The notes: generated from the sequence alone by a model not told the origin. DNA of 64,000 nucleotides from Macrostomum lignano (GCA_002269645.1 NIVC01001567.1:124001-188000), one strand, 5' to 3'. Numbered from the stretch's first letter, positions 16,926 to 59,382 are shown. Program-made: numbers and translations.

Positions 16926-18271
16926 CGAGGGTCATCCCAAAAGTTCTCTGTATTGGGCTGTAAATTCTGTTTGGGGTAAAAGCTGGCCCTGAAAATGCAG
17001 GCATTCAGAATTGTATAAGAGCTGAGCAAAGTCCAAAATTTTTGACAGAAAATTCTGCACTGTTTGATTTCAGCAGCCAAATTAAATCAGCACTTATGGA
17101 TCAAATGGCCATGCAAGAAAGTTTTTCGAAAACGGATGTTCGCCAACTGATAAAATTTCACCTGCTGCTGGGAAAATCGGTCACCGAAACGCACTCAAGC
17201 CTGCAAGATGGACTGGGACCCTGCTGTCCATCATACGAGACAGTCAGAAAGTGGCACTAGCAGTTCAAGACCGGCTCAGCCGAAGTCCAAGATGCTGCAC
17301 GAACAGGACGTCCGAGTACTGCTCGTGACGACGAGCACGTGGCTCTTGTCAGCGCATGGCTTGAGCAGGACAGCCGGTTGACCTGTGAGGAACTCGCTGA
17401 ACTGTCTGACATCAGCGCTTCTACTGTGCACAGAACTCTGACAGAGCAGCTTCACAAGCGCAAAGTGGCTGCAAAATGGATCCCGCATGTGCTGACAGCT
17501 GAGCAGCTCGGCAACCGAATGCGGATTTCTGCAATGCATCTCCGTCGATTTCGTCGCCAGAGCAACAAGTTCTTGCATCGCATTGTTGCTGGCGATGAAA
17601 CATGGGCCAGGGATTTTGAGCCTGAGCTGAAGCGTCAGTCAGCAGAGTGGATTGGTGAGGGCGAACAGCGGCCAGCGAAGGCAATCAGAAGTCAGACGCC
17701 GATCAAGTCGATGCACATTGTTTTCTTCGATGCGCAGGGGCTCCTGGTTGAACACGCTGTGCCACGTGGCACTACAGTCAATGGAGAGTACTACACACCC
17801 TTCATTCGCAATCATCTGAGGCCTGCCATTCGCAAGAAGCGCCCTAATTTGCTAGGAAAAGGCCCAATTCTTCTGCATGACAACGCGGCTCCGCACACTT
17901 GTCGAGCAGTCGTGCAGCTTCTCACGGAGGAGTACGACTGGGAAATTCTCGAACACCCTGCGTACTCACCGGACTTATCGCCATGCGACTTTTACTTCTT
18001 TTCGCAGGTCAAGAACGAGCTTCGGGGCCATCGGTTTTCTTCTGTGGAGGAGCTCGATGGCGCTTTTCATCAGCAGTGCATCAGCTTGGCCAAGCGCGGT
18101 TTGAGTGCCGGCATTGACGGCTTGGTGACACGCTGGACGAAGTGCGTTGAGCTTGACGGTCAATACACTGAGTGACTGGATGTTTAACTATCAGCTGAAC
18201 TTGTTTTTTAAGCAATATCGTATTTTGTTTTAGTCTTTTACACAAATAGAGAACTTTTGGGATGACCCTCG
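16926..18271 (+). mobile_element. Full-length mariner element (1346 bp) with 24-bp perfect TIRs and TA TSD
   Basis: TA|CGAGGGTCATCCCAAAAGTTCTCT ... AGAGAACTTTTGGGATGACCCTCG|TA. Confidence 0.97.
17096..18175 (+). pseudogene. Mariner transposase with a single premature TAG (17258-17260); DD35D spacing
   Basis: HTH region, WIPHVL, IVAGDETW, HDNAAPH and YSPDLSPCDF motifs. Track ORFs 17042..17260 and 17339..18175 are in the same frame. Confidence 0.95.
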
Positions 18272-20344: not shown

Positions 20345-22127
20345 ATGTCCACACCAGACGGACAAACTTATGTCTTCACCAGAGCCCCAATGGGTCTACA
20401 GACCTCACTAGCAGCCCTCTCTAGAGCAGCTAGCCTAATCCTTCAAGGGATTAACAGAGTTTCAACATACGTAGATGACCTACTTGTCTTCAATGAAACA
20501 TTTGAAGACCATCTCGAGACATTGAAAGGTACCATAGAAGCTCTAGGAAAGTACGGCATGAAGTTGAAATTACAGAAGTGCAAATTCGCGAAGCCCACCA
20601 TCACCTTTCTAGGACACAAGATAGACAAAGATGGAATACAGATTGATAGAGCTCTAGTTGACAAAGTGCAGAAGGTACCAAAGCCACAAAATGTCACACA
20701 GCTTAGATGTTTCCTAGGACTCTGCAATTTTTTCGCAAACACGTACCTAACTACGCCAAGAAAGTCAAGCCACTCACAGACCTGCTTAAGGGCACACCGA
20801 ACACTAAGGCTCAAGCATCCAAAACCCCACTAAAGTGGACAGAAAAAGCGACCCAGACCTTTGAAGACATAAAAAAATGGATAGCAGAAGATCTCAGGCT
20901 CACTCACCCTGACTTTAATAAACAGTTCATTGTCTCCAGCGACGCTTCTACAAAAGGCATAGGTGCAATGCTCTCACAGAAAAATGAGACAGGAAAGGAA
21001 AAACCAATAGCGTTCACGAGTCGACAACTGAGAGAGGAAGAGACGAGATATGCTGTCACCCATCTAGAACTCTTAGCCGTCTTTTACGCATTCAATACAT
21101 TCGAACAATTTCTCTACGCAGCACAAATACCCACATTGCTAAGAATAGATCATGCACCACTCAGAGATCTACTCACAGGGAAAACCCTGCGGAACAATCA
21201 GGTACTCAGATGGCTTCTATATTTACAACAGTTTCAAATGCAAATTGAGTACGTCCCAGGCGCATCCACCAAACACGCAGTCCCAGATGCACTTTCAAGA
21301 CTATACGAGGACCAAGAGGCACCTATCAACTTTGTCACGATCAAGAACCCGATACCACACCTGCAAGCTTTAAAAGAGGCTCAAGCGGAAGACCCATTCT
21401 GTCAAGGCATACGAGCGCTATGGAAACAAAAGCCCATGGATGACAGCTTAGCTATGAGATACAAAAGACACATCCAGCGACATCTATCGGACTATGCGGA
21501 CATTCACGGAATCATTCACAGGACAGCAGATCACGCCCAAAAGTGCTCCCATTCAAGTACCGGGAAACAATCTGCCACTCGTTACACGCACTACCACTAG
21601 CAGCGCACTTAGGCTTTGAAAAAACCCTAGAAAGAATTAGGCGACACTATTTTTGGATCTCAATGGTTTCTGATATTCGAACCTTCTGTCAAGACTGCAT
21701 GGATTGCGCTAAGAACAAATCCGGCCAACTTCATAAGGGACTCGTCCAAATGCCTGAAATTCCGATGAAACCAATGGACAAGCTATCAGTAGACCTAGTA
21801 GGACCCATGGTCCCCACGAAAATCCGGAACGAGCCCGTCACCCACATCCTGACTATCCTGTGTTGTTTTTCAAAATTCGCCTTTGCATTCCCGATTCCAG
21901 ATTTATCAGCAGAAACCACAGCCGAAACTTTGTTCCAAGTCTTCTGTATGTTTGGAATCCCCGAACATTGGCAACGCCAACACAGGCAACTGTTCAGCAA
22001 GGAAGTGGGCGTACAAGCTGATGACGAGACGCTCGCGGACACAGTTAGAAAGAAGTACAATCTGAGGAGCAAACCCATACTCCGACAAATGATGTCAGGA
22101 GATGGGGGGAGAGTACAGAGACTATAA
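20345..22127 (+). mobile_element. Second Ty3/Gypsy pol (RT C-half, RNase H, integrase HHCC with the catalytic core deleted)
   Basis: STPDGQTYVFTRAPMGL..TYVDDLL; SSDASTKGIGAMLSQ..YAVTHLELLAV..IDHAPL..PDALSR; H..HLGFEKT..C..C; VDLVGP; the sequence jumps from FGIPE directly to the KYNLRS terminus. Confidence 0.95.
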
Positions 22128-37808: not shown

Positions 37809-38852
37809 TCATGGCAACTGGCGAAAGAACTCGACAATCTGCTTTTCCGTCATTGAGGCGTTGGCCAGCCCCACAGCTCTCACGGTGCCTCGCAGAGTCG
37901 AGCCGCTTCCGGAGAACCGGCGGCCCACCGACAGGACAAGGCAGGAATGAAAAGTATTTGCAACGCTGCGAATTCCACCGGCCTCTACAAAGCTGCCGTC
38001 ATAAAAAAGTGCTGATGAAGATACTTCGCCAAATTTCACGGAGACTCCAATGTTGATCCACGCTTTACTGCTCGCTGGCAGCAGATTTATAGTTTGGGAG
38101 TAGAATAAAAAGTTTCTGCTGTCTGAGGAGGGACCCGCTTTGTTGAAGTACAGTCTATTTGCGGAATTATGTTCCCAAAGATGAGGTCCGAAGGAGCTCA
38201 TGTCTGAGCAGGAAACGGCTTCTAAGAATGGCTGGACCTTCGGCTCCCTCCTGAGCCTCATCAGCCACGTGAAGCTGGCCGACGGGTCGCTCGAGACGAA
38301 GCGACTGTCGTTGAGCAGCGCGTACGACGATGTCCCGTCGAAGCTGGCGCCCTCCTCAGTCCACTGCAGGTTCGCGCTCTCCAGTCGGTGGCCGCCGCCC
38401 CCGCCGCTGTCGTTCTGGCACACCAGGTTGCTGAACCGGCTGCTCCCACCTGCCAGCCACACGCCCACCAGCTGAGCGTCGAGCGAGGCGTCGCAGCTCG
38501 CCAACGACAACGCACGATACACCGAGCACTGCGACTGCTGCACTGCAGCTCCAGCTCCAATCGCGACGGCACCGCTTGCCTGCATCGTGCGACACACCTG
38601 CTGGTAGTGGAAGAGCGAGCACACACCTGTCTGCTTGTTCCACTCAAGCACCAGGCCGTCAGGCTCGCTGCTCGCTTTCAACACGCAGGCTTGCAGGCTT
38701 TGCGAGCTCCATCGAGTCAGCGCCGAGGTCTCGTTGAGGCAGTGCGGCATCCGGTACTGGCACCAGCGCCTGCCGCAGCTGCTTTTAGACGTGCCCTTTC
38801 CCACTGCCAATAAAAGCACCATCAGGAAAGCAAAGATATCTTTTGTTCTCAT
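37809..38852 (-). CDS. Secreted PAN-like + LamG/ConA-like protein, paralog A (347 aa, intronless)
   Basis: Signal peptide; SLQAC..WNKQTGVCSL (PAN/apple-like); LVGVW..FDGTSSY..SFT..WINIGV..LFYDG..LSVG..LRGTVRAV..MTEKQI (Laminin_G_3-like). Confidence 0.85.
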   Translation of the reverse strand: MRTKDIFAFLMVLLLAVGKGTSKSSCGRRWCQYRMPHCLNETSALTRWSSQSLQACVLKASSEPDGLVLEWNKQTGVCSLFHYQQVCRTMQASGAVAIGAGAAVQQSQCSVYRALSLASCDASLDAQLVGVWLAGGSSRFSNLVCQNDSGGGGGHRLESANLQWTEEGASFDGTSSYALLNDSRFVSSDPSASFTWLMRLRREPKVQPFLEAVSCSDMSSFGPHLWEHNSANRLYFNKAGPSSDSRNFLFYSQTINLLPASSKAWINIGVSVKFGEVSSSALFYDGSFVEAGGIRSVANTFHSCLVLSVGRRFSGSGSTLRGTVRAVGLANASMTEKQIVEFFRQLP

Positions 38853-39718
38853 TTAGGTGCGAATTTTAAAACTGATGGACAGTCAGAATTTTCGACAACA
38901 GAACCGATAGCTGAAGCTAAGGCCGCAGTTGCAGAATAGCAGAAGAGCCGTTGAGAATGCTGGAGGGTTTCCTTAAATAAGAAAGACACTCGAATGATTG
39001 ATATAGCTAAGAGTGTTTGCAGGCCTGCTTTGCACAGCTGTCGTTGAACAAGCTCAAATACTTCAAATAGACATGTATTACAAGGAAACTGGCTATTTGA
39101 CTTGTTGGGTTGTGGATTCTGCTGGGCACTCATTGCAAGCGATAAGCCCTTTTTACATAGTCGATGAGTGTCAGTTTTTTGGCGTTTGCATTGTTTGCAA
39201 AAGCCATACTTACTTTTTACCAAATAATTGATTCATTCTTGGATCCCGGCATGTCTTATTACCAAAGAGAATAGCTGACGTGAAGACTCGACATCATCAT
39301 TCTCAAATTCTGGCTTTAAGATCCATCCAGCCACTCGCACTCACACCCAATCAGACTCGTCTTTCGTCTTTCAGTGTTGCCGCTATGTTTAGAGTCTGTT
39401 TTTAAACAGAAAGCTGTGTAGCTCGTGGGCTCTGTTCGGTAACGAGGATAGGGCCTGTCGACTTAAGCTGATAAAATGGAGCCCGATCGAGTAACCGATA
39501 TATGCAAATGATACGTCATTCTGCTCACAGTCGTGACTCCAGAAAGCTAAGTTTGGCAAAAAAGCGACAAATTTGGAACTGTAAATAATTTAAGGACTGT
39601 TATGTACACTTTATGAGCTCAAGTTGACAGGCCCTTTAATTTGCCATTACGAGTTGTGTCAAAATCAAAGTTTCCAAGCTTTTCTTCTAAAATACATGCA
39701 TGCATTCAACAAACGGTA

Positions 39719-40467
39719 CCCAGGCCAAGAAGCGTCCCGGAGTCACTTGCGTCGCCCCAGAGTCGTTGCAGACGCGTTGCAGATGACAGGTCAAATAGAA
39801 AAGAAGTGACTCTAAACGACTCTAAAACGACGAGATTTCCCGGTACAAGTCGCCAAAAATTCTGGGGCGACTCTAGTGATTCTGGGGCGACTCTAGTGAC
39901 TCTGGGGCAACTCTAGTGACTCTGGGGCGACTCTAGTGACTCTGGGGCGACTCTAGTGACTCTAGGGCAACTCTAGTGACTCTGGGGCGACGCTAGTGAC
40001 TCTAGGGCGACTCTAGTGACTCTGGGGCGACTCTAGTGACTCTGGGGCGACGGTACAACGATTCTGGAGCCGTAGAGTCGTATGTGAGGCGTTCCAGAGT
40101 CGCATCAGAGTCACTGAGTTGTGTTTGAAGCGTATTTGCGTGGCTTGATGAATTAGAGTCACATTTCCGGCGTTTCAGCGGCATTCTGCAGTTGCATAAA
40201 AGTCGCAGAAGAAGCGCTTTAGCTTCACTGTAGAATCGTTAGTGCGTCACTTCTGAGGCGTTCTGGACGCGTTACAGAGTCGGTACTACCGGCCTCAAAC
40301 AGACTGTTGGATCGCCATTTCGAATAGAAAATGCATGCTCATCGACTCCAGCTCTACAGCGACGCTGTGTTTTCTACGTTTGACCTCGTATTTGACCTGT
40401 CATCTGCAACGCGTCTGCAACGACTCTGGGGCGACGCAAGTGACTCCGGGACGCTTCTTGGCCTGGG
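39719..40467. mobile_element. 749-bp MITE with 79-bp perfect TIRs, CCCAGG...CCTGGG ends and TA TSD (CACTA/EnSpm-like)
   Basis: 39719-39797 is the exact reverse complement of 40389-40467, with TA on both sides. Confidence 0.93.
39861..40052 (+). repeat. 20-bp tandem repeat (TCTGGGGCGACTCTAGTGAC), about 9-10 copies, inside the MITE
   Basis: Read directly. The unit shares GACTCTGGGGCGAC with the TIR. Confidence 0.95.
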
Positions 40468-40874
40468 TACCGTTTTCACCGGGTATAGTCTGCCTTTCGT
40501 TTTCGTGTTTCCTTTCGTGCTGGCTGACGCGGGCGGCTCTCTGTCTGCTTATGTCCGTGCCCTAACCCAGTGACTGTTGCAGCAGTTTTCCTTCAAAACT
40601 TAACTGAAAGCGTCATATTGAAGTTCCATCGCAACATATGCATTTTACAGGTTTCGCAAAGACCGGTGCAGGTAAAATGCCTAAGATGTGGCACCTTCAA
40701 AATACATTGCTAACCAAGGTAAGACGCTAAACTAGTAAATTGTGAATATTGTGAAAATTGTGAAAGCCTGAGACCGCAAAGAATAAAGTTGAGAGAGATT
40801 TAAAGCCAAAATTTTTATCAAATAAAATTGGGGAAGTGCCTGCAAAACCAGTGCAGTCTTGCATTAAATGAATG

Positions 40875-41335
40875 TCCCGATCTAGCACCTGTCTCAATCT
40901 AGCACACCTATTCCGATCTATCTAGCACACTTGTCCTGATCTAGCACACCTGTACTGATACACACCTGGTACTGATCTAGCACACTGAACCTGTCCCGAT
41001 CTAGCACCTGTCTCAATCTAGCAGACCCCTATTCCGATCTATCTAGCACACCTTTCCCGATCTAGCATACCTGTCCCGATCTATCACACCTGTCCCAATC
41101 TAGCACACCCATCCCAATCTAGCACACCCATCCCAATCTAGCACACCCATCCCAATCTAGAACACCCATCCCAATCTAGCACACCCATCCCAATCTAGCA
41201 CACCCATCCCAATCTAGCACACCCATTCCAATATAGAATACCCATCCCAATCTAGAATACCCATCCCAATCTAGAATACCCATCCCAGTCTAGCACACCC
41301 ATCCCAATCTAGCACACCCATCCCAATCTAGCACG
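40875..41335 (+). repeat. 19-bp minisatellite (TCTAGCACACCCATCCCAA)
   Basis: Read directly. Degenerate on the left, homogeneous on the right. Confidence 0.9.
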
Positions 41336-42510
41336 CATTCACCCCTATCTAGATGTATTTTTGGGACGGCTTTTACATAATATTGTGCTAGATATTAGTT
41401 TCGGGCTTTGGATTGAACCATTTAATTATCGGTATTTATTGGTGAATTGTACATAAAACAAGTAATAAATGCTTCTTTCAAATAGTTATAGTCTATTAAA
41501 AGCCTCCAAATATTTATTAATCAAATGGGTAAAAGGTTTGAAACAATCTGCAGATATATTTCAGAGTAGTACTGTCCGGACTAAAGGTATTCAAGTATAC
41601 CGCGGAAGTAATTAGCGAAAAAATCCAATTTAACAAAAAATTTCCTGTCAAGATTCCGATTAATATTAATTGGCAAGTCTTCCAGTTACCATTGTTCCGT
41701 GAATTCCTAGCAGCTGGACATAATGGATTCTTAAGAGCTATTGTAGTTGCAGTTGCCCTGCAGTTGTTAGTAACTATGGCATCCGTCTTGAAGCCTCGCC
41801 AAAGAAGAATGAAGCGACTCGTTGCAATCACGTGATGTTTTTCATTTCAGCCTTTTTTACTCAAGGAAAAGTTCATCTCCCCCAGCGCCCTTGAGCAGGG
41901 GAAATTAGTTAGTCCAGTAGGCTTGGAAAAAATCCTAATTGCAAAGATTCATTTGGGGTTAAGGTAGAGTTGATCATTGACTCTCTTATGGTATGGCTCT
42001 GTATTAGGTGCCAAAGAGTAGCCACCCCTTAACCGGTAAAAGTCTGCGCAGTTGTTTATGAAGATTTGCCTAAAAATAGTTTCTTGCCGTGTGGCAGCTC
42101 AACAAGCTACTCAATAATTAACGTTATAGAATAAAATCAAATGGGCTTTTCAGAATTGATGGTAGCAGAACTGCCGGTGGATATTCAGTTGGAGAGAAAT
42201 AAAACAAAAAATCCAACTGGCCCCATTGAATGCCGGCAGCTGGCGGAGGGGCTCTGGGGGTGTTGGAGGCACAGGGGGGGACGGCTGCTTCAGCTGCTTC
42301 CCACAAACGCTGAGGCAGAGCAAATAAAACCCGTGGAAAAAAGCAGCCGAAAATGCGCTCAAAACTTTTTCAGACCAGCACGAAACCTCCAGCCGCTCAT
42401 TTCTGTCAAGCGGAGTAACAAGGACACTCAATTGAAGGTCCAAATTCGAAACGAATACAAGAAAGAGTAAAATACTATAACTATTTACCGAAACAGCTGC
42501 AGTTAATGAG

Positions 42511-43554
42511 ATGACCAACAGCAAAATTATCGCTCCAGTAATTCAGCTGCTCCTCTGCCTTTTCATCGGGGCTGAGTCGGCAACGAGCTGCAGCAGGCGC
42601 TGGTGCCAGTACCGGATGCCGCACTGCCTCAACGAGACCTCGGCGCTGACTCGATGGAGCTCGCAAAGCCTGCAAGCCTGCGTGTTGAAAGCGAGCAGCG
42701 AGCCTGACGACCTGGTGCTTGAGTGGAACAAGCAGACAGGTGTGTGCTCGCTCTTCCACTACCAGCAGGTGTGTCGCACGATGCAGGCAAGCGGTGCCGT
42801 CGCGATCGGAGCTGGAGCTGCAGTGCAGCAGTCGCAGTGCTCGGTGTATCGCGCGTTGTCGTTGGCGAGCTGCGACGCCTCGCTCGACGCTCAGCTGGTG
42901 GGCGTGTGGCTGGCAGGTGGGAGCAGCCGGTTCAGCAACCTGGTGTGCCAGAGCGACAGCGGCGGTGGCGGCGGCAGCCACCGACTGGAGAGCGCGAACC
43001 TGCAGTGGACTGAGGAGGGCGCCCGCTTCGACGGGACATCGTCGTACGCGCTGCTCAACGACAGCCGATTCGTCTCTATCGATACTTTTACCGGCTTTAC
43101 TTGGCTGATGAGGCTCAAAAGGGAGCCGAGGGTCCAGCCTTTCATAGCAGTGGTTTCGTGTTCGGATTTCTCTATTATCGGTCCATTTTTTGTTGAATTT
43201 AATTCTGCCAACAAACTTTATTTCGGCACGAGCAACAGGCTGGCTCAGAAAGTCCTCTTGCACTCCTCTGGTGAATTTCTTACCAGCAGCTCCAGCTCAT
43301 GGGTGAACATCGCAGTCAGCATTGGCGCCGACGCTATCAGCAGCAATCTGTTCAGTGGCTCGTCCTTTGACTACAACGTGACTCGAAACGTCGGTGCTTC
43401 ATACTCGCAGCTCTTCTGCCCGGCGATTCTGATCGGCAGATACCAGACTCCATCGGTAAACTTCACCCTGCAGGGCACGGTGAGCGCCATCGCCATTGCC
43501 AACGGCTCACTGACCGAGCAGCAGATTCGCGCTTTTTTCAATCTGCTTCCTTGA
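42511..43554 (+). CDS. Secreted PAN-like + LamG/ConA-like protein, paralog B (347 aa, intronless, inverted relative to the others)
   Basis: Same architecture as paralog A. Central block nearly identical; signal peptide and C-terminal ~150 aa very different. Confidence 0.85.
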   Translation: MTNSKIIAPVIQLLLCLFIGAESATSCSRRWCQYRMPHCLNETSALTRWSSQSLQACVLKASSEPDDLVLEWNKQTGVCSLFHYQQVCRTMQASGAVAIGAGAAVQQSQCSVYRALSLASCDASLDAQLVGVWLAGGSSRFSNLVCQSDSGGGGGSHRLESANLQWTEEGARFDGTSSYALLNDSRFVSIDTFTGFTWLMRLKREPRVQPFIAVVSCSDFSIIGPFFVEFNSANKLYFGTSNRLAQKVLLHSSGEFLTSSSSSWVNIAVSIGADAISSNLFSGSSFDYNVTRNVGASYSQLFCPAILIGRYQTPSVNFTLQGTVSAIAIANGSLTEQQIRAFFNLLP

Positions 43555-45594
43555 GCTGCATGTACTTTACAGTGTCCCAATGACGGCCGGTTTACATACT
43601 CAAGTAGAAAGACGGGAACTATTAGGTTTCTTGGAAAATTTTAGAAGGCAGGTTTAGTTAGGGAGGCAAAATTCTATGGCGGCAACCGGAAACTTTCGTA
43701 TAGGAGCGTATTTAGCCCCGAATATTGTTATTGCATTTGATATATGATCAATTGTTTATCTTTCGATATGTCTTCCCGATCCCTATTGATATTCATAGGG
43801 CTTTTCGAATGTGAATCTATTTTGTCATTCTGTTTCACATTTTTTAACGCAGTCAGTTAAGAATAATGAACTAGCTAACTAAGAATAATTCTGTTCTATG
43901 AGTATCAATAGAGCTATGAGACGTGAAGACATATCAAAAGATGAACATTGGGTCTGCCTCTATAAAAGGTAATAACAAATTTTGTGCTGAAAAAATGAAA
44001 ACCATCATTCTCCGCAATGTAATTTTTTCGGTGTCTCCTAAAACTTTTTTGAACAAAATGTTGTTTACCGTCATTCTACTTGAGTAGTACTTATAATTGC
44101 CACCTGAGCAATCTTCTCAACAATGAGTAGTCTTTATTTTCTGCAAACTTCGACTAAATGTGCAATGTTTTATCTGCACAGACTATGTGAGTCTTCTGCT
44201 CAAGTGTGGATATAAAATCAAGGTGCCACTGGGGGTAGGGAAGAAGGGTAGCTGTATGGCCCCCTAGTGACAATTGGAGGCCAAGTTTTATAGAAAAATA
44301 TTGGCTGTTGTGCTAAAATGAGACTATAGCAGGTATGAGAGACAGAAATGGAACTTCCTTCCTAAAAAGTTCTGTCGATATTGATAAGTTGTTAGAATAC
44401 AAAAGAAATATGATCTATGTTCTGTATATCTTAGATATATATGAATAATGTTAATAAATGTTATTTTATATTTATAAAATTACAATTAAATGTAACTTTA
44501 ATAATATTCCTTGATCAGCTCGAGAACCGAACCAGCACCCAAAATTGCACCTATTCGTTGCATTAAAATAGACGTGTTTTTAACGTGTTTTTTAGATTAA
44601 ACTAGCAATGCCTTCGCTAGCGCCTGAGTTTTTTGTGTTGTTTCCCGACCCCAAAGTCTATATAAATGTCTTATAGTTTTAATTTAACTTTCCTGCTGCT
44701 CTTTTTTGATACTTTTGCGATGCCTATTTAACTACTCATATTTGTTTATCTGCCTTGTAACTTTTCTTTGCTTCGATTGACCTGATCGATTTTTATCCGG
44801 TTCCGGAATCCTGATATAAATTCTCAATAATATAATTTACAGACTTATCTTCTTATACTGTAGTTATAACTAACAAATAACTAATTAACTATCTAACTAG
44901 TTGCAGTACACTCTACCTTTCGCATTGCGCCCTTGTCTATTTATAATGTAGCTACATCAAGCTAGTGTACATCCACAATACTTAAGTGCATGTTGCTCTT
45001 TGAGCGAACGCTTGGATCTCAAATACATTAAATCACAATCAAACCCCAGTGGAGGCTAACTTCTAATTCGGCAAATTCTACTACCCAGTGGAAAAAAATG
45101 GCTCGGGCCACCGGTGGCCATTCGATGGCCAGTTGGCCTTATGGTGGCCATTACAAAAACTTACGTATGCCCCTATGTGACATTATAACACCATTATAGG
45201 TATCTGCTTTGTCATTAATCACATCGTTTAACATAAAAATGCAAGATAATTCAACCTCGGCAAATGCATGGCACTTCTTCGGCTTGGCCATACAAAAGGC
45301 AAAGCGCTGGTCATGCCGTGGCCAAACTATCTGCAAACCAGTCATACTACTCATAGTAAACAACTAGGTATGCGGAGATATTTGTATAAAATTTATTTAT
45401 TTTAGAGAAATGAGAAAATATTAATTTTCTCAATTCGAGATTGTGGCAGCTGAGGCAAGCATCCGGGTGGAGTGCTACTGGGTGGAGTACTAATCTGGGC
45501 AGAGTGCTAACTGGGCAGAGTGCTAATCTGGGCGGAGTGCTGGTAATCTGAGGGTGGGTGGTGTTAATCTGGGGGAGTAATGCTGGGGCTGGGG

Positions 45595-45950
45595 GGATGC
45601 TTGCTATCTGGGCTGGGCGGATGCTTGCTATCAGGGAATGCTTGCTATCAGGGGATGCTTGGCTATCAGGGGATGCTTGCTATCAGGGGATGCTTGTTAT
45701 CAGGGGATGCTTGCTATCAGGGGATGCTTGTTATCAGGGGATGCTTGCTATCAGGGGATGCTTGCTATCAGGGGATGCTTGCTATCAGGGAATGCTTGCT
45801 ATCAGGGGATGCTTGCTATCAGGGGATGCTTGCTATCAGGGGATGCTTGCTATCAGGGGATGCTTGCTACCAGGAGATGCTTGCTACGAGCCGTACAAGG
45901 AAATGCTTGCTATTAGAAGATGCTTGCTATCAGGAAATGCTTGCTATCTG
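45595..45950 (+). repeat. 17-bp minisatellite (GGGGATGCTTGCTATCA), about 20 copies
   Basis: Read directly. Explains the 17-aa periodic spurious ORFs. Confidence 0.95.
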
Positions 45951-46269
45951 CGCAGGGGTGTCGGAACCGGGGGGGGGGGGGGGCACAGGGGTGCTGAAGC
46001 CCCCCACCAACTTTTTTGCATGATCCTCCAAATGCCCTTTTTGAATTTCAAGCAATTGTCATCCAGTTTTCGGCTTTGGCTTTAGTGAGTCTTGGAAGCG
46101 AAGGGTACCAGCTGATATAATAGTTCAGTTCAGTTTTTATCTAATGTGCCTAAGCCTAGTGCTTTTAGTGCAAGGGTCAGCAAACTTTTTACCTCAAGGG
46201 CCGGATTGAGAACAGCGCATGACTGCCCTTCTTTTGCCCTCTTAGAAGGCCAAACTTTTGCCCTCAACA

Positions 46270-47907
46270 GCATCTTCCGGCAGCTGCACATCACCCGAGT
46301 AGAGCTGAAGTCTCAGATGGAGCAACAAGTGCAGCAGATGAGGGCAGAAATGCAGCGCCTGCGTCGCGATCTCCTGGCTGCGATTGGAGGGCATGGTGGG
46401 CAAGCCGTTGCAGCTGAGACCGAGCCGGTGCCAGTAGGGTCATGGAGGGAGTACGCGAACTTCGTCACATCTTCTGAGGCGATGATGGCGCGGGTAAGGG
46501 ACAATCTGGATTGAACAATATTTTTGTAGCACAGAAGTTCCCTCTCCTTATTCACAACTCAACAGTGTACAATTTGACAAGGCTACCGATTTGACAGAGT
46601 CGTATCTTAGTGCAGTGCTCACTCTGCAGTCGGCAGAGTGTAATCTCTATTTTATGCTTCATCCGCTCCATTGTTTCTGAGCATGCATTGGAAGGACAAA
46701 ATTCGGATTACTTTTAGACTTATATGTGCAACTGTTTGCTACTGTTAGTAAATCAAAAGCACTGTGGAAGGATTTTTCAAACATAATTATAAAATCTTTA
46801 CTTTTTCGCACGTCTAGCTCGTTGTACAAGTCAGCCTCAACCTTCTAAGTTTAAGGAGACAAACTTGACTTTTGACAATTCGATCAGTTTGTATTTTTGT
46901 GGGAATAGCCTAGTGGGTATAGCTGTTATGTATGATTTGACTGCTCTACTCAAAGCAAATAGAGAAAATAAAAATATTACAATAACATAGCATGCTAATT
47001 CAACCTGACTGTACATGAAGGCACTTTTTTATATCTTTTTCTAAACAATTGCTATATCGCTCCTTTTCATGCAGGTGCCATATCTCTTAGCCTGCAAATC
47101 GGCCACCACATATAACACCGTCCGTCGAATGGTGGACAAATGCCTCACAGTCGAGATGCAGCAGCAGGTGAACTACAGCGGCCGAGATCTCCAGAAGAGG
47201 AGTCAGTTGGAGCTCTCCGACACCCTTCTGGCATTCGAATGCCCTGCCTGCTTTCCAAGGTGAGCATGTTTCTTCTTTTGGATCATAGCCATCAGTCAGT
47301 TGGTACACCAAATTATGCACAAGTCTTCGCCTTGCTTTCATTATCACCGGCCGCTCTCTTTATTAAACTTTCATGCTTCAGTGGGGAGTCGTATCTTAGT
47401 GCAGTGCTTAGTGCTGTCGGCAGAGTGTAATCTCTTTATCTTATGCTTAATCCGCTCCATTGTTTTTGGGCATGCATTGGAAGGACAAAATTCGGATTTC
47501 TTTTAGGACTTATATGTTCAATTTTTAGCTACTGTTAGTAGACCAAAAGCACTGTGGAAGGATTTTTCCAACATAATTATGGAATCTTTACTTTTTCGTA
47601 CGCCTAGCCCATTGTACAAGTGATGCAATATTCCTACACTTATTTTGCTTCAGCTGCCATCTCGAAGATGCACGGAGGTCAGAGGCCTGCCGAGCGCGAT
47701 GTGGAGATAGCAGTCATCTCCGTCCTGAAAAACGCGCACGACAGAGCGGGAGGCCGTCAAAAGCGTCGCGATTCCTCAGCGGCGGCGGCTGTAGTGGCGC
47801 AGGCAAACAACGACCAGCAAGGAGGAAGACGAACTGCAGATGCGGACCGTCCTCGGAAGCGAACGCGGGAAAGCAGTTCCGAGGACGATTCACTCACATT
47901 TGAGTGA
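46270..47907 (+). pseudogene. DUF4806/BEN-like transposon accessory protein, 3 exons (~46270-46493, 47075-47259, 47654-47907)
   Basis: Coiled coil + PVGSWREY; NTVRRMVDKCL..NYSGR..KR; ERDVEIAVISVLKNAHDRAGGRQKRR. GT-AG introns; a 1-nt phase conflict near 47240. Confidence 0.6.
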
Positions 47908-47943
47908 TTCAGCCCTTTGTAGCCTTAATTGCTTGCATGAGTT

Positions 47944-48576
47944 CCACTGACTTATTTACCACTGAATGTCTTGTATTTCCACTGACTTATTTACCACTGA
48001 ATGTCTTGTATTTCCACTGACTTATTTACCACTGAATGTCTTGTATTTCCACTGACTTATTTACCACTGAATGTCTTGTATTTCCACTGACTTATTTACC
48101 ACTGAATGTCTTGTATTTCCACTGACTTATTTACCACTGAATGTCTTGTATTTCCACTGACTTATTTACCACTGAATGTCTTGTATTTCCACTGACTTAT
48201 TTACCACTGAGTGTCTTGTATTTCCACTGACTTATTTACCACTGAATGTCTTGTATTTCCACTGATTTATTTACCACTGAATGTCTTGTATTTCCACTGA
48301 CTTATTTACCACTGAATGTCTTGTATTTCCACTGATTTATTTACCACTGAATGTCTTGTATTTCCACTGACTTATTTACCACTGAATGTCTTGTATTTCC
48401 ACTGACTTATTTACCACTGAATGTCTTGTATTTCCACTGACTTATTTACCACTGAATGTCTTGTATTTCCACTGACTTATTTACCACTGAATGTCTTGTA
48501 TTTCCACTGACTTATTTACCACTGAATGTCTTGTATTTCCACTGACTTATTTACCACTGAATGTCTTGTATTTCCA
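47944..48576 (+). repeat. 35-bp minisatellite (CCACTGACTTATTTACCACTGAATGTCTTGTATTT), about 18 near-identical copies
   Basis: Read directly. The unit is a 15+20 dimer of CCACTGA. Confidence 0.97.
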
Positions 48577-50096
48577 ATGACCTTTTTAGCCAAAAATGTA
48601 TACCGCAAGAAGAATGTAAAAATAAAAATACAATGCGTATATATTGTCCGCTTGACAATTCGTTCTCCGACAAACTTTAAATTGCCAAAAGTTACGTTTT
48701 GAATTTTGGCGCGAAATGTAAATGTTCGAGCCAAGTACATGTTTCCTGTACTTTTGTTGGTGCTATTGAGGTGGGGGGGGGAGAAAATAAAAATCTTGAA
48801 CTTGGGAGCTTGGAGCGGTTTTCTTTAAACTTTAAACTGCCGCATTCGTGATCTTCGGCACTTGTAAAGCCGAAAAAAAATTTTGCAGAAAATTCGGACG
48901 CATTTCTCCTGCTTTACTCCGACTGCCGGGTTCCTCAGGTCCGGGGGGAGGGTAGTCGTAATCGTAACAGAGCGGTCGTTAGAGCGGCACGGTCGTTCAG
49001 ATGGTAGACACCGTAGATTTTGACACCGTAGAATTTGCGCGTTGAATGTGCTGATCTGCTTACTTTCAGTAGGGTAGAGCTGCCACCACCGTAATTTACG
49101 TATTACGGAACGTTGAAGTCTCAGACTTTCTTTGAGTTGAGAACTTGTTGTTTTACGCCCCACGGGCAAATAACTTAATATAGACTAACGAGGCTTCAGT
49201 TAATTGATAGGAAAATTAATAGCAGACTGTTTACGGTTTTATTAAGTCGACAAACGATAGTGAATAAGTATTGATGCGACAGAGAGCGAGATACGATCGA
49301 TGAAGTGCATCCGGCGTGCCGGGGTGCTAAACTAACTTATGATTCTTAAGCTTTATTGATAGACTAAACAGCTAATTAAAAGCTAAACACAAGAGGCAGA
49401 GGGGTAGGAGGATGAGAGGAGGAAAAGGTGGAGGAGGAAGAAGAAAAAATAAAAAGTAAAAAAGTAGGAAAGTTAGTAAAACGCTGCGATTTCGCATTGA
49501 TTAAATAATACACGGAGAAGTTAGGACACAAGTTGGGGTGAACAAGGCCAACACTGAGATCAGTTACGGGATCCAGCGGTGGTGCATCGATTGGAAAAAA
49601 CAAAATATTGAACCGAAAATAAGCAAAGTAAATTTGGCACGGGGGTGGGGCAACAGAAGGGACCACAGACGGGAAAGGGACAAACCACACAAGGGCGCAA
49701 CCGCGGGACCAACCAAAGGGGCAAACCCGGGAACGAGAGATGGCGGGACACGTCATTTCGCACCTCATGGTGGACAAAATGGGCCTAACCCGGGGACAAA
49801 GCAAAAAAACACCGGTGGTAGCCCACCTACCACACTATGCTGTGTGCACAGTGCAAACTCACACTGTCTCTGATGATTTATAGGCACGGTAGGTGGAACT
49901 ATAATAGAATAAAATTACCAGTAGAATGGGGCAAAAATAAAAGACGCGAAAAATAGGAGGCAAAGCGCTGGCGCGCTGGTGGCGGGCCAGCGTTGGGTCG
50001 AGCCAGATTTAGCTGTGCATTGCCACCCTCGGCCCGAGCCAGACACCCCTCCGGTGGCCCGAGCCCTTTTTTTCCACTGGGTAGCCTCACGTCATT

Positions 50097-50100
50097 ACTA

Positions 50101-50135
<35 letters not shown>

Positions 50136-50194
50136 CTAACTAACAAACTAAATAACTAACTGACTGACTAACTAACTAACTAACTAACTAACTG

Positions 50195-50227
<33 letters not shown>

Positions 50228-50327
50228 ATAACTAACTAACTAACCATCTAACTAACTAACTAACTATCTAACTAACTATCTAACTAACTAACCATCTAAC
50301 TAACTAACTAACTATCTAACTAACTAT

Positions 50328-50389
<62 letters not shown>

Positions 50390-50390
50390 G

Positions 50391-50429
<39 letters not shown>

Positions 50430-50502
50430 GACTAACTAACTAACTAACTAACTAAATAACTAACTGACTGACTAACTAACTAACTAACTAAATAACTAAC
50501 TG

Positions 50503-50539
<37 letters not shown>

Positions 50540-50554
50540 ATAACTAACTAACTG

Positions 50555-50590
<36 letters not shown>
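50097..50590 (+). repeat. (TAAC)n microsatellite, about 490 bp
   Basis: Read directly. Starts about 15 bp outside the right TIR. Confidence 0.97.
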
Positions 50591-50591
<1 letters not shown>

Positions 50592-50895
50592 GTAACTGGC
50601 AATATTCTGATTTAATATTCTCATGCAAAACATTTTTCTTCCTTTTTATTTATCCGCAGACGCAGACACAGAAGATAAGAAAGCTTAGCAACTACTAAAA
50701 TTGAATATTAAAAACGAGTTCAGTCAGAAACAATGGCAGTATAAAATCAGGGTACCTTCGGCACTGTGAGCAAAACATTTGCAAATTCGCACTTCTAAAT
50801 ATAAATAAAGCATATAACTCAAGAGGGAGATGCAGAGAGGCCAATAAGCTTTACAAAATGTCGTAGAGCTTATGAAAAATTTCTAATCGGGTCAA

Positions 50896-51948
50896 CTAAG
50901 GTAACGAAGAGAAAAAGTGTCGTATCTCAGCCTCTGCCATGGAAGCGTTGGCGATCGCTAGAGCTCTGATCACTCCCTTCAAAAATAAGTTGTTACCGTA
51001 AAAACGCCGGCCCACCGACAAGTAGAAGCAGCTATGCCGAACACTTGGGACAGGGTCGAGTTGCGTACTTCCTACGAAGCTGCCGCTGAAGTACAGAATT
51101 GCCGGCGCTGAGCTGCTGGGTTTGAAAACAATCCCAATGTCGATCCAAGACTCGCTGCTCGCCGGGAGCACATTTAATTGTGACTCTACTCGAAAATTTT
51201 CAGCCTCTGAACTTGTGCCAGAATTTGTGAAGTAGAACTGATTTGAGGAGCTATACTCCCAAAGATGAGGTCCGTAGGTGTTCTTGTCTGAGCAGGAAAC
51301 GGCTTCTAAGAACGGCTGGACCTTCGGCTGCCTCCTGAGCCTCATCAGCCACGTGAAGCTGGCCGACGGGTCGCTCGAGACGAAGCGACTGTCGTTGAGC
51401 AGCGCGTACGACGATGTCCCGTCGAAGCGGGCGCCCTCCTCAGTCCACTGCAGGTTCGCGCTCTCCAGTCGGTGGCTGCCGCCGCCGCCGCTGTCGCTCT
51501 GGCACACCAGGTTGCTGAACCGGCTGCTCCCACCTGCCAGCCACACGCCCACCAGCTGAGCGTCGAGCGAGGCGTCGCAGCTCGCCAACGACAACGCGCG
51601 ATACACCGAGCACTGCGACTGCTGCACTGCAGCTCCAGCTCCGATCGCGACGGCACCGCTTGCCTGCATCGTGCGACACACCTGCTGGTAGTGGAAGAGC
51701 GAGCACACACCTGTCTGCTTGTTCCACTCAAGCACCAGGTCGTCAGGCTCGCTGCTCGCTTTCAACACGCAGGCTTGCAGGCTTTGTGAGCTCCATCGAG
51801 TCAGCGCCGAGGTCTCGTTGAGGCAGTGCGGCATCCGGTACTGGCACCAGCGCCTGCGGCAGCTCGTCGAGTCAGCAAGAGGCAGCAGCAGAAGAAGAGC
51901 GGCTGTCAAGACGACTTTGCAGCTGTGGGTTTTGCCCGGTGACTCCAT
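50896..51948 (-). CDS. Secreted PAN-like + LamG/ConA-like protein, paralog C (350 aa from MESPGK)
   Basis: ATG at 51948; signal peptide VVLTAALLLLLPLADS; same domain motifs; ends in TAG. Confidence 0.85.
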   Translation of the reverse strand: MESPGKTHSCKVVLTAALLLLLPLADSTSCRRRWCQYRMPHCLNETSALTRWSSQSLQACVLKASSEPDDLVLEWNKQTGVCSLFHYQQVCRTMQASGAVAIGAGAAVQQSQCSVYRALSLASCDASLDAQLVGVWLAGGSSRFSNLVCQSDSGGGGSHRLESANLQWTEEGARFDGTSSYALLNDSRFVSSDPSASFTWLMRLRRQPKVQPFLEAVSCSDKNTYGPHLWEYSSSNQFYFTNSGTSSEAENFRVESQLNVLPASSESWIDIGIVFKPSSSAPAILYFSGSFVGSTQLDPVPSVRHSCFYLSVGRRFYGNNLFLKGVIRALAIANASMAEAEIRHFFSSLP

Positions 51949-54233
51949 TTTGCTTTGCGGCCTAGCGGTGCTGAGCACGAGAAGTTGCGCGTGGGTTTTG
52001 CCGCTCCGTTCTGACTAAATTGCTTCAGCTTGTCTTCTCTGGCTCTCCGCAGCGGAGTGGGGAGGGGAGTGGCTTGGCCATAGCGACAGGGGAGCTCGCT
52101 TGCTTCTTATGAGATGCGGGCAAAGCGTTGATGGGCTGCGCTGGGGTAGTCAGTGGGGTGGCCAGCAGTTTCCAGCCATTGCCATTAATCAGCTGCATTT
52201 TATTTGATGCGGGGGCCAGAGCTCTGCAGGCTCCCTGCGTGGGCAGCAGGTTCTCTTCATCATCGCTATTGAAGTTGCTTTATGTCTCTCTTGATTAGTC
52301 CCTATCTCCATCCTCCCATCCCGTGGGCAGTTGTTGCAGCTCTGAATTTTTCATGAGTCAGCAAGGGTGCGATATAGGCTGCGTGCTATAGCTGGTTTTA
52401 TAGCCATTAGCTGCCACGATGCAAAGGCTGTTGAGGTTGTTGTTGTTGATGTTGAGGCAGCATGTAGATGTGCATTGTGGCCTGGGTAAGGGGGCAATAA
52501 CGGCATCCAAGGTTCAACCCTTCTACTTACTTACATGGATGTCCATGTTAAAGTCGGGGTGGGCATGTTAAAAGGTAATTACCATTAGTTTAAAAAAATT
52601 TTTTAATTTGTTAATGAGCAATGATATGCGAGCTATCTCTATGCTCTCTGCGGGTGAATATGTAACAGTGTACTTCCGAGTGCATCGCACATGTAGTTGC
52701 AAAGGGGTAGTGGTTAACGTCTCTTGCATCGAGGAATGAGGTTCCCGACGAGGCCAATTGACAATGTAGACGGGCCGGAATTTTCAGCAGGACGTTGAAT
52801 CCGAACAAGATCATGGGGATCTGGCAGAGCCGGTACAGCTGCAGAAGAAGCACAATCGCTCGAGTGGTAAGTCTCGCCAAAGTCTCGATTACATGTAGGC
52901 TGTCCAGTCCAGGCAAAGTCTTTAGCGACGCAGGGATCGCAGCAGAAATATGTTGGTCAGCACGGCGACGGCTACCGGAGTGACCGTCTGCAGCCCGTAG
53001 TTCTCCATGGTTTTGTACTGGGAACACGTGGACAGTGGATTACCAAAGTAGCCGAGCTCACTCTCCAGATGAAGAAAGCCAAGCAGGCGGCTGTCCGGTT
53101 TCTGGAGAACCACAGTTTGGCGCGGATAGGCCAGCGAATCTTGACGCCGCGCACCTCAGAACAGCATTGTCCAGCTGTGCGCGGTCAGAAACGGCGCCCC
53201 CAGCACCAACGCAATCGAGTGAGCCTACACGACAAAGTTGACGAACTCGGAGCTCCAAGCCGGCACAGACTCCAGCGTGTGACAGGCGTTGTCGATGGTG
53301 TTTCCGAGCATGAAATATCGTGTCCGTAACGGCCAGAGCCACAAAAGCGATGCAGTTGCACACCACCGCCACAACAACAACACAAGGCACACCAAATTCT
53401 GGAGAATGTTAAACGTTACGTAGAACAAGATGGGCAAGAGTTGATTCTGGTGCGACCAGCGCTGATGCTCAGCTTCTGCTTTGCGACTAGCTGCCAAGGC
53501 TGGTCGATGCTGAGCTGAGCAGTTCAATAGGCATCTATGTTTTATATTATGCGATTTCTACTCGTAATATAATGCACCAGATCTCTAGGTTATCGGCGAA
53601 TGAGACTGTTTGGCTTCATCTAGCGATGCTTGAGAAACTTCATCCCATAAAAGATTCTTCTTCTACAGTTCTGCAACCAACATACTTTATTGTTGGAATT
53701 TTGGTCACCTCAGAGGTGCTTGTCAAGAATTGATATTTAATAATTATGTAGCGATAGCAGATTTCAAGCAGACGATTTCATAACGCGTAGAGACGAAGAG
53801 AGTACAGTACTATCTTTTGTGAGCTGCGTCATTTACGTAGTATTTTCAAAGTCAGTATTTATGTAGTTTTTCATCGGTGCCCCGACAGTGACCCCATTGG
53901 TCACCATACAGCGCCTCCATCAGTAAAACTACAGCGCCTCCATCAGTGACCCTCCAACGACCTGACCAATGTCTGCTATTCAACGATCTTTATTAAGCAA
54001 CACCTGAATAACAGCAAACACTCCGGTTTCAGCTGTCAATTGGACTAGCCAACCCCAATAGGGACACTTGAGTAAGCGAAAAAAAGTTTTTTTTTCAACA
54101 GCCAATATCGCGATGTGGGAATTAAGGGTTGGACTGACGGACACCATCAAGTATATAAATACTGACGGGACAGTGTTGGGTGAAACAGCATCCGAAAGGC
54201 AGACTAGTGAGTATGTTTTTGAAGGCCTTGACA

Positions 54234-56398
<2,165 letters not shown>

Positions 56399-57120
56399 AC
56401 CAGAACTGAGTTCAAAACTCAGAATTTTAAGAAAACTACGCGCCGATTTACGCTTTACAATTCAATGAGACTGGGGCATCTCAAATCTAAACTTAAGTAC
56501 CTTTGTTTGGAAAAATTATATAAACTTGTCCAGTAACAGGCATAAATTTTCAATACAATGTTCCTATTGACTTTGAGAATGAGATTGACAGCATCGAGAG
56601 TTTTGTAGGGCGCTTCTCCGTGAAATTAAAAGTGAATAAGGGCCTGGGGCTAATAAACAAGATGGACTAAGCTGACATTGATAAGCCTCATCTCAATGTG
56701 TCTGAGTCCTGTGCCAACATGGCTATTTTTTTGTACTCAACAACTCCTCAAAACAAGTTCTCGCAAAACAAGAATGAGAATCTACACACCTGGGCAGGAT
56801 TGCCGTCAGCACTGGATATTGTGGGCCAGCAATGGAGGGTTCACCTAAAGTCATTAGACACAGAACAGGTAAACCAAGGCTTCACAGAAATTGAATTGAA
56901 CTCCTCTGAAAGTCCAAGGGCAACTTTCATGCCACGTGTTTGTGATCTTGTGATCGTTTCATTAGATTAATTTTTGTGCAACGCCAATCAGGTACAGAAT
57001 TTAGCTTGGGTGGGGATATATTGAAAAAGCGAAGAATGAAGTAAGCGGCTTTAATATTTGGCTTTAATAGTTTGAGTTTCTTGTCTGACTATCAAGCTGC
57101 AATTAAAGCGGCCGATGTTT

Positions 57121-58176
57121 TCAAGGCAGCACAGAGAAGAACTCATTGATTTCTGCCAGCGTCATTGAGGTGTTGGCGACAGCCACGGCTCGAACGACTC
57201 CATTGAGACTGGTGCCTCCTCCGGCGAACCTGCGACCCACCGACAGGAACTGGTAGGGCAGCTGATGATCGGCTTGTTCAGTGGCGCTGCTGACAGAGAC
57301 AAAACTGCCGCTAAAGTACATTGACGACAGAGTTGAGTTGCCGGCTTTGACGGTGACCCCGATGTTGATCCACGATTCGTCGCTCGCTGGCAGCAGATTT
57401 TCATTGTCGGAGTACAGCACGAACCTGCTGCTTTCGGAATTTTATATCGTTTTGCTGATATAAAGCCTATTGACCGAATCGTACTCCCAAAAGTGGGACC
57501 CCACTATAACCAAGTTTGAGCAGGACACAGCCTCCATGAAGGGCTGGATCCTCGACTGCCTCTTGAGCCTCATCAGCCACGTGAAGCTGGCCGACGGGTC
57601 GCTCGAGACGAAGCGATTGTCGTTGAGCAGCGCGTACGACGATGTCCCGTCGAAGCGGGCGCCCTCCTCAGTCCACTGCAGGTTCGCGCTCTCCAGTCGG
57701 TGGCTGCCGCCGCCGCCGCTGTCGCTCTGGCACACCAGGTTGCTGAACCGGCTGCTCCCACCTGCCAGCCACACGCCCACCAGCTGAGCGTCGAGCGAGG
57801 CGTCGCAGCTCGCCAACGACAACGCGCGATACACCGAGCACTGCGACTGCTGCACTGCAGCTCCAGCTCCGATCGCGACGGCACCACTTGCCTGCATCGT
57901 GCGACACACCTGCTGGTAGTGGAAGAGCGAGCACACACCTGTCTGCTTGTTCCACTCAAGCACCAGGTCGTCAGGCTCGTTGCTCGCTTTCAACACGCAG
58001 GCTTGCAGGCTTTGCGAGCTCCATCGAGTCAGCGCCGAGGTCTCGTTGAGGCAGTGCGGCATCCGGTACTGGCACCAGCGCCTGCGGCAGCTCGTCGAGT
58101 CAGCAAGAGGCAGCAGCAGAAGAAGAGCGGCTGTCATGATGATTTTGCAGCTGTAATTTTTGCCCGGTGACTCCAT
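57121..58176 (-). pseudogene. PAN-like + LamG paralog D with a 1-nt deletion near 57445 (or an assembly error)
   Basis: Track ORFs 57442..58203 and 57121..57420 join into a full-length paralog if one base is restored at LYISKT-xx-NSESSRF. Confidence 0.85.
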
Positions 58177-59239
58177 TTTTTGCGGCTTAGCGGTGCTGAG
58201 CACGAGAAGTTGCGCTTGGGTTTTCGCCGCTCCGTTCCAATTAAATGGCTTCAGCTTGTCTTCTCTGGCTCTCCGCAGCGGAGTGGGGAGGGGAGTGGCG
58301 TGGCCATAGCGACATCCAGTGGCGGCTCCTGATCTGCATGAGCCTCTGCATCCAGCAGCTTACTCGATCTAGTTCCCATTCCCAGTGAGGCAGGGAGTCC
58401 TGCATTTGTCAAGAGGTGGGGAGGGGCAGCCCTGGCATGTTGCCGCAACAAGCAGTAAAGCGTATCAGGGGTGGCCCAGTATCGATTAATTCGGTGTACA
58501 TCGGTAAGCTCAGTTCTCAAATAAGTTGACTTGTGGCTCACTGTTGAGAGCAAAGCTTTTTAGAGGCAGAAGCAGCGAAATCCTAAGGATGCAACCTCAA
58601 CTGCCCGGACTTCCGCGTTGCCATTCCACTGATAGCTAAATCAGAAGGACACCCCACTCTTCCACTTTCGCTGGAAGTTGTTTTCGCTTCTACATATAAA
58701 TGCATTGGGAAGTCCTCTGTTTCTAGCGAAACTTCCGGTTTCAAACTCAAGTAAATCTCACAAGAGACCCCAAATGCTCAAAACTGAAAACTTTCTATCT
58801 GACTAAACGTATGAGCAATGGGCAGTGAAAACTGGCTTCAATGCGAAATTCGAACCACTTGGTCCTATCTTAGAAGTTTTCACGTTGCTTTGATATGAAG
58901 AATTCTATTTTTTCCTATTATTATGTTCTAAGATCGATCAGAAATACGAGTAAAAAGGTTTTCTGAACTGAAACTTGTTGAACGTCAGTTCCGAAAACAG
59001 GGCCTTCGACTGCTGTCCAACGTTTTCGTGGGAATCTCAATGTGACTTTCAAATGATCCTTTAATAAAAACTTACGGGGCAACTGCATTCAATGATTTTA
59101 ATTTCAAAATTTCTTTGAAACCAAGTCTCAGGGGATTTCGCTCGATTTCGACTGCTTATTGCAGTCAAGAGACGTTGTCCAGTTCTGCTAGCTGTTCAGA
59201 CAGGGAGCTGCGGCAACTGCGGTGCCATGACTCGATTAG

Positions 59240-59382
59240 GCAAAGTTGGCAACTCGGCTCTCTTCTGAGCCTCATCAGTCACGTGAAGCTGGCCGACGGG
59301 TCGCTGGAGACGAACCGACTGTCTTTGAGCCGCGCGTACGACGATGTCCCGTCGAAGCGGTCGCCCTCCTCAGTCCACTGAC
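59240..59382 (-). pseudogene. PAN-like + LamG paralog E, short remnant
   Basis: QWTEEGDRFDGTSSYARLKDSRFVSSDPSASFT*LMRLRREP on the minus strand. Confidence 0.85.

Follow-up and report, generated by a model that had tools for sequence, protein, structure and literature searches.

A 64,000-nucleotide stretch of the Macrostomum lignano genome (GCA_002269645.1 NIVC01001567.1:124001-188000; hereafter the window) carries an array of four intronless paralogs, A to D, in which a 5' block (the constant block, or core) is nearly identical between copies, whereas the 3' part (the tip) has diverged to synonymous saturation; a fragment of a further copy, E, retains part of the block. The explanation that fits these genes best is that old paralogs have undergone localized, GC-biased gene conversion of the non-allelic kind, and we put the probability of this explanation as a whole at roughly 0.75. 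Conversion homogenizing a GC-rich 5' block had been suggested in an earlier note on the same DNA, and the contrast in synonymous divergence, the diverged flanks, the GC content at third codon positions (GC3) and the mosaic tract ends described below all support it. The five elements reported in that note were recovered by open reading frame (ORF) listing and tblastn within the window (Table 1), with A, B and C being uninterrupted ORFs.

A near-identical block is joined to saturated tips

The paralogs were compared in a codon alignment, in which the block runs from SC.RRW to RFVS (492 aligned nt) and the tip is the region after SCSD. Between pairs of A to D, the block was 97.4 to 99.2% identical in nucleotides and 96 to 99% identical both at third positions and in amino acids, while the corresponding values for the tip (the 3' ~390 bp) were 44 to 59%, 34 to 50%, and 33 to 48%. 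The third-position contrast between block and tip was significant in all pairs (Fisher p 1e-23 to 1e-34). These values agree well with the near-identical block of ~495 bp and the ~30 to 50% protein identity beyond SCSD that the earlier note had estimated, but its count of about 8 differences between A and B in the block was too low, since there are 13 nucleotide differences and one 3-nt indel. Synonymous divergence (dS, Nei-Gojobori) was far from equally low in the two parts, ranging from 0.018 to 0.064 in the block and from 1.26 to saturation in the tip. The near-identical stretch spans 0.49 to 0.58 kb, covering a Cys-rich N-terminal module (N-module) and the first strands of a predicted β-sandwich (see below), and it is the last ~130 codons that are at synonymous saturation.

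When each gene was compared with blastn together with ±1.5 kb, the onset of homology was abrupt, 72 nt past the ATG and just beyond the signal peptide, and homology ended 575 to 750 nt further on. Neither the flanks within ±1.5 kb nor the signal-peptide codons aligned between copies, except for C and D, which have a common signal peptide and ~140 nt of common upstream sequence. Since flanks and signal-peptide codons have diverged beyond alignment, the A, B, and C/D loci are old.

Tract ends, base composition, and broken copies point to gene conversion

The 3' end of the near-identical tract differed by copy. Divergence of B started at about column 195 (~RFVS|I) and that of D at about column 207 (~12 codons later), while A and C were identical up to column 224 (SCSD). 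In a Sawyer-type permutation of polymorphic sites, pair-specific runs were found for A-C (p=0.0004) and A-D (p=0.004), and the run shared by C and D was reached by 0 of 5000 permutations (p<0.0002). Incompatible groupings of the copies were also seen within a few codons, with column 210 grouping AB|CD and column 212 grouping AC|BD.

GC3 was 0.84 in the block and 0.55 to 0.65 in the tip. For a 29-codon linker, GC3 was 0.59 in B, where this segment is unconverted, versus 0.83 to 0.93 in the converted A, C, and D, which is the pattern expected of GC-biased conversion. The same contrast was present in a second organism, represented by JGI sequences (0.62 to 0.75 versus 0.43 to 0.60). Furthermore, the broken copy D (98 to 99%) and fragment E (85 to 93% identical to the cores, with homology stopping at the same boundary) both keep the block, which argues for recent copying rather than for constraint on the product. 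The block also contains a (GGC)4-5 run encoding GGGG(G) at codon columns 156-160 (B ~42955-42975), and this run was variable in length among the copies and in P0001, a chimeric M. lignano model from UniRef.

We propose that recurrent, localized, GC-biased conversion would homogenize the block between old copies, each copy having its own tract end. Such conversion would probably be self-limiting at the tip, since the diverged tip offers too little homology for a tract to extend.

The constant/variable layout recurs in three further groups

An exhaustive HMMER search over 1.84 billion representatives identified 43 relatives, namely M. lignano members inside chimeric models, ~20 proteins from JGI samples (encoded on contigs of 0.9 to 1.8 kb), and weak, generic multi-LamG_3 proteins. 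Beyond flatworm-type sequences, generic Laminin_G_3 similarity was all that was found among these representatives.

The JGI proteins have a constant block of their own (VWVMSDDEDASKSNLVC..GAKFDGTSSKMTLENVNFG..TWLLRLKR), followed by unrelated tips. Comparing L001 with L002 at the DNA level, we found, in order, a leader and signal peptide at 100% identity, a patch in the N-module at 50 to 60%, a segment at 100%, a linker at 54%, a segment at ~99%, and the tip at 45 to 50%. Two cassettes of these proteins exist in alternative forms (QQ or PK; SGVEWTK or INVTFTS), and all four combinations were present, indicating recombination. The genomic contigs L003-L009 start within the block and continue into flanks that are AT-rich and contain repeats; starts at this position are expected where a short-read assembler breaks at a repeat. 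The end of L001 was considered as evidence of polyadenylation and was rejected as a short-read loop artefact.

For M. lignano, the pairs P0005/P0044 and P0019/P0021 were 94 to 100% identical up to ..LRMKR / ..HLKR and 19 to 42% identical beyond. This gives four groups (the window family, the second organism, and two M. lignano subfamilies), each with its own block and each breaking just after the same TWLxRxKR strand. In neighbor-joining trees, core branches were short and tip branches long within each group, and the tips clustered by group. Each of the four groups had its own core, and the tips also grouped by lineage. At the level of sequence, these comparisons show the constant/variable layout, which the earlier note had seen in the window alone, to be a trait of the family that recurs in three further groups.

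A second hypervariable patch, of ~40 residues, was observed in the N-module between 100%-identical segments (L001/L002 columns 54-98; P0002, P0005). Both the second organism and subfamily 2 of M. lignano vary in this patch, which is constant in the window family.

The boundary falls inside a predicted ConA-like sandwich

Each ORF starts with a basic n-region, a hydrophobic stretch of 10 to 13 residues, and a small-residue c-region (read directly), and N-x-S/T sequons are conserved after this signal-peptide-like region. The products are predicted to be secreted and are probably glycosylated.

Pfam Laminin_G_3 (PF13385) matched residues 176-342 of C with 28.5 bits for the whole protein and 30.8 bits for the C-terminal part (cut-off 27.6). 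C was the only window copy above this threshold, as A and B alone fell below it, and the domain was matched by 8 of 26 family members (E<=0.01). AlphaFold2 (AF2) with a 26-sequence alignment gave a model with a mean per-residue confidence (pLDDT) of 76 and a predicted template-modeling score (pTM) of 0.69, while modeling from the three window paralogs alone was unusable (pLDDT 35). Foldseek against PDB returned 264 matches at E<=0.001, of which the top ones were all concanavalin A (ConA)-like jelly rolls, led by lectin-like domains from the (trans-)sialidases of trypanosomes, together with the Hc-N domain of clostridial neurotoxins (E ~1e-8, probability 1.0, ~240 columns). The best sequence matches in PDB were CBM40 sialidase lectin modules, which were non-significant (E ~0.1). 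The assignment of the C-terminal part to the LamG/ConA-like fold in the earlier note is thus borne out by the Pfam match in C, the 8 of 26 matching members, and the jelly rolls found by Foldseek. Its conserved anchors, in the form W.NIG, LG.R, and G..RA..IAN..MT..EI..FF, are likewise real and were kept across the 26 family members.

From these models, we infer an architecture of a ~70-residue Cys-rich N-module (~31-100), followed by a ~240-residue ConA-like/LamG sandwich (~110-350), the span of the latter following from the ~240 of 350 residues that align in Foldseek. The block would include the first sandwich strands, since the Laminin_G_3 match begins at DGTSSY within the block and since the Foldseek alignments are of this length. 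On the model, the constant/variable boundary is inside the sandwich, directly after the strand FTWLMRLRR, and not between domains as the earlier note had it. Nor did the label "PAN-like" for the N-module find support in sequence comparisons. The module has five invariant Cys and, in AF2, the order strand-strand-helix-strand-strand-helix (residues 31-97). There was no Pfam PAN match even at E<=10, a profile of nine N-modules against PDB gave a single chance match and no PAN, and hhalign of the N-module against a neighboring PAN-like ORF gave a probability of 0.3%.

The boundary strand (C residues 198-206, ~51331-51357, and the same position in 26 relatives) has R-x-[KR]-R at its end, almost without exception. 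This is a dibasic motif of the furin type, and it lies in a β-strand that AF2 predicts with high confidence. The motif may thus be structural, and it could also be a site of processing.

Selection on the tips and possible function

Of the alternatives to conversion alone, the one that survives best is an adaptive recognition system, in which positive selection would act on the LamG tip while the other half, an effector or scaffold, would be kept constant by conversion. We regard this as possible, if rather unlikely. Evidence for it comes from L007 and L008, an allele-like pair from two samples that is 94.5% identical across gene and flank. In the tip of this pair, 24.7 replacement changes stand against 4.3 silent ones, which corresponds to a ratio of replacement to silent rates (dN/dS) of 1.63, and the replacements are clustered just past the boundary and in one loop. 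The ratio was significantly higher than 0.3 (p=1e-4), but not significantly higher than 1 (p=0.21). Among the window paralogs, which are old, tip dN/dS was 0.17 to 0.36, with dS saturated. Adaptive diversification of the tip, as put forward in the earlier note, is therefore not established by either set of ratios. Strands were more conserved than loops (entropy 1.93 versus 2.56, p=4e-4), as an adaptive system would have it, although loops are more variable than strands in most proteins. A lectin-like fold with sugar-binding structural neighbors is also in favor of recognition, while the presence of a pseudogene among the four window copies, in addition to the fragment, fits neutral birth-and-death evolution.

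Neutral divergence of the tips is a viable reading: conversion needs homology, so that after the tips had diverged only the block would still be homogenized. We lean somewhat toward fast tip divergence after duplication, since the same boundary recurs in four groups with tips that are monophyletic within each group, and quick divergence of the tips once a gene has been duplicated would account for this more readily.

As to function, we infer that the family could provide a repertoire of secreted proteins of lectin fold that have the N-terminal half in common and differ in the C-terminal half of the sandwich; the different C-terminal halves would probably have different ligand preferences. A more specific proposal, that macrostomid-type flatworms have here a large, germline-encoded and hitherto unknown constant/variable recognition family serving immunity, self/non-self discrimination, or sexual conflict, in which conversion fixes the N-terminal half and the C-terminal half is diversified by selection (as is the N-module patch in some groups), we consider unlikely. 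Under that proposal, the constant half would possibly have a role in oligomerization, effector docking, or processing at RxKR.

Other explanations for the conserved block

Could the block be conserved without any copying, through purifying selection at the nucleotide level on an overlapping ORF, an antisense transcript, or a structured RNA? Synonymous sites are conserved in the block, and alternative frames are open in all copies (128 aa in sense +1; 105 to 156 aa in antisense, up to 260 aa in B). However, these open frames matched what was obtained from codon-order shuffles of the GC-rich block, with one of five frames reaching an uncorrected p of 0.02, and an overlapping ORF was rejected on these controls. 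In addition, the few differences between copies alter the alternative-frame protein, pseudogene D and fragment E retain the block, and the block end differs per copy, with GC3 following the tract ends. This explanation is highly improbable.

We find it equally hard to credit a young array in which the block shows the true age and the tips, along with the signal peptides, mutate at a locally raised rate or evolve very rapidly. The tree shapes would suit it, with tips that are monophyletic per group on long, star-like branches and cores that are short-branched. A young array would have alignable flanks, though, and the non-coding flanks on either side could not be aligned among A, B, and C/D; the exception within each locus is the block and not the tip, and the tract ends are copy-specific. 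Least probable of all is an assembly or polishing artefact, in which reads of several copies were collapsed to one consensus: ~0.5-kb repeats at 97 to 99% identity are prone to mis-polishing, but the cores are not identical and have private substitutions (7 in A; an extra GGC in B), the separately built M. lignano model P0001 has a further variant of the block, and the second organism has the same layout in other data, with contigs that break at the block.

Some points nevertheless weigh against gene conversion among old paralogs as the full account. The protein collection that was searched does not contain the window proteins, partial homogenization of the window copies by assembly polishing is conceivable, and the grouping expected of concerted evolution was examined among the four groups described above. 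Also, tip dN/dS below 1 in the window means that the tips may be simply old and less constrained.

Chimeric gene models and a neighboring receptor

The only close database match of the window block was P0001, the chimeric M. lignano UniRef model, which has 33 block residues at 97% identity in addition to out-of-frame translations of more of the block. Here, the block is joined to a G-protein-coupled receptor (GPCR), and a degraded paralog of this GPCR, with frameshifts and stops, lies in the window at 52600-53530 (-). The GPCR parts of the window and P0001 were 54 to 77% identical, compared to 97% for the block fragment. In P0001, the GPCR is continuous with a copy of the constant block, which points to a further GPCR-plus-lectin locus elsewhere in the genome.

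Family members were also noted in other chimeric M. lignano UniRef models with misleading names, so that the set comprises P0001, P0002, P0004, P0007, P0019, and P0023. Their fusion partners include the GPCR, clathrin heavy chain, a P450-like part, and others. P0002 has two tandem cores joined exactly at the boundary motif. The practical consequence is that the repeated block breaks short-read assemblies and yields chimeric gene models (P0001, P0002, P0004).

Layout of the array

The coordinates of the gene copies and their constant blocks are given in Table 1. With its premature stop, D is predicted to be a recent pseudogene or null allele.

Table 1. Gene copies and constant blocks of the array (positions counted from the first nucleotide of the window)
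Feature	Position	Strand	Description
Paralog A	37809-38852	-	Intact 347-aa ORF: signal-peptide-like N-terminus, Cys-rich N-module, ConA-like/LamG domain
Constant block of A	38289-38780	-	A-C near-identity extends on to 38202
Paralog B	42511-43554	+	Intact 347-aa ORF; opposite orientation to A, C, and D; most divergent tip
Constant block of B	42586-43080	+	Shortest tract, divergence from ~RFVS|I; one additional GGC in the (GGC)n run
Paralog C	50896-51948	-	Intact 350-aa ORF from ATG; open frame extends to GTG at 51978
Constant block of C	51373-51864	-	Near-identical to the blocks of the other copies
Paralog D	57121-58176	-	Single frame kept; premature TAA at 57442-57444
Constant block of D	57601-58092	-	98-99% identical to other copies despite broken gene
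Fragment E	59246-59380	-	135 bp, ~45 codons, 3' end of constant block (QWTEEG..LMRLRREP); in-frame stop

Mini- and microsatellites are dense between the paralogs (39861-40051, 40920-41334, 45619-45886, 47942-48588, and 50101-50597, with periods of 20, 19, 17, 35, and 4), and several directly adjoin a gene copy. Another, different gene lies within the array at 54180-56400 (+). Its ORF at 54180-54581 has a signal- or transmembrane-like start and sub-threshold matches to PAN_1 and PAN_4 (E=0.008 and 0.027), followed downstream by WxxW motifs and a sub-threshold TSP_1 match (E=0.003); two repeats break the gene, namely a microsatellite, (TCTG)86 (54834-55177), and a minisatellite with a 21-nt unit (55740-56034). 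Elsewhere in the window, transposable-element remains were found at 12118-13035, 17339-18175, and 20345-22127, consisting of two retroelement ORF sets of the reverse transcriptase-RNaseH/integrase type and a mariner-like DDE transposase.

Significance and comparison with known systems

The protein family is undescribed, while the mechanism, localized gene conversion in a multigene family, is already known. The earlier note had not recognized a described family either, and this holds: Pfam gave borderline Laminin_G_3 only, no source had a name for the family, and no paper on such a lectin-like family turned up in literature searches that combined Macrostomum with the terms laminin G, concanavalin A-like, or gene conversion. 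If the tips do bind different ligands, the family would constitute a recognition repertoire that is new and specific to its lineage. Its host is a model flatworm that regenerates and is hermaphroditic, and that serves for work on immunity and sexual conflict although few of its receptor families are known. Whatever the function, the array is a clean example from nature in which a conversion tract stops at the same in-domain point in several independent groups, and it should be useful for studying the parts played by conversion, GC bias, and selection in partitioning a gene.

With regard to fold, the proteins match the ConA-like lectin/glucanase superfamily (Laminin_G_3, CBM40, trans-sialidase, Hc-N). 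They differ from its members in that sequence identity is 10 to 17% and that the Cys-rich N-module and the invariant TWLxRxKR strand are family-specific, and none of the ligand-binding residues of the superfamily could be matched in the array proteins.

Among invertebrate lectin families with a constant and a variable part, the fibrinogen-related proteins (FREPs) of Biomphalaria combine immunoglobulin superfamily and fibrinogen domains, are immune-induced, and have reported somatic diversification (PMC12074976, PMC7588048). Like the FREPs, the array, known from sequence alone, would encode a multigene family of secreted, lectin-type proteins in which one part is more conserved and the other, of sugar-binding fold, is diversified. 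The role of conversion is reversed, since in FREPs it is invoked as a source of diversity, while in the array family it would homogenize.

The closest parallels concern the mechanism. The silk-moth early chorion ErA family (Hibner, Burke and Eickbush 1991, as cited in PMC2576457) is the classic case of localized gene conversion, and the polymorphic mucins of Schistosoma mansoni (SmPoMuc) are a flatworm case in which the homogenized parts are repeat units and introns; these mucins have a demonstrated role in host-parasite compatibility (PMC2576457). As in both of these, the paralogs of the array are clustered, and one segment is concerted at near-identity while neighboring segments differ. Simple-sequence runs have been proposed as initiators of conversion (PMC2576457), and the block of the array likewise has its length-variable (GGC)4-5 run. 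The array further resembles SmPoMuc in its flatworm origin and in encoding secreted glycoproteins, secretion and glycosylation being predicted for the array. Unlike SmPoMuc and chorion, it encodes a Cys-rich module and a ConA-like sandwich rather than a mucin or a chorion protein, and unlike SmPoMuc its genes are intronless, with a converted tract that is coding and ends inside a folded domain.

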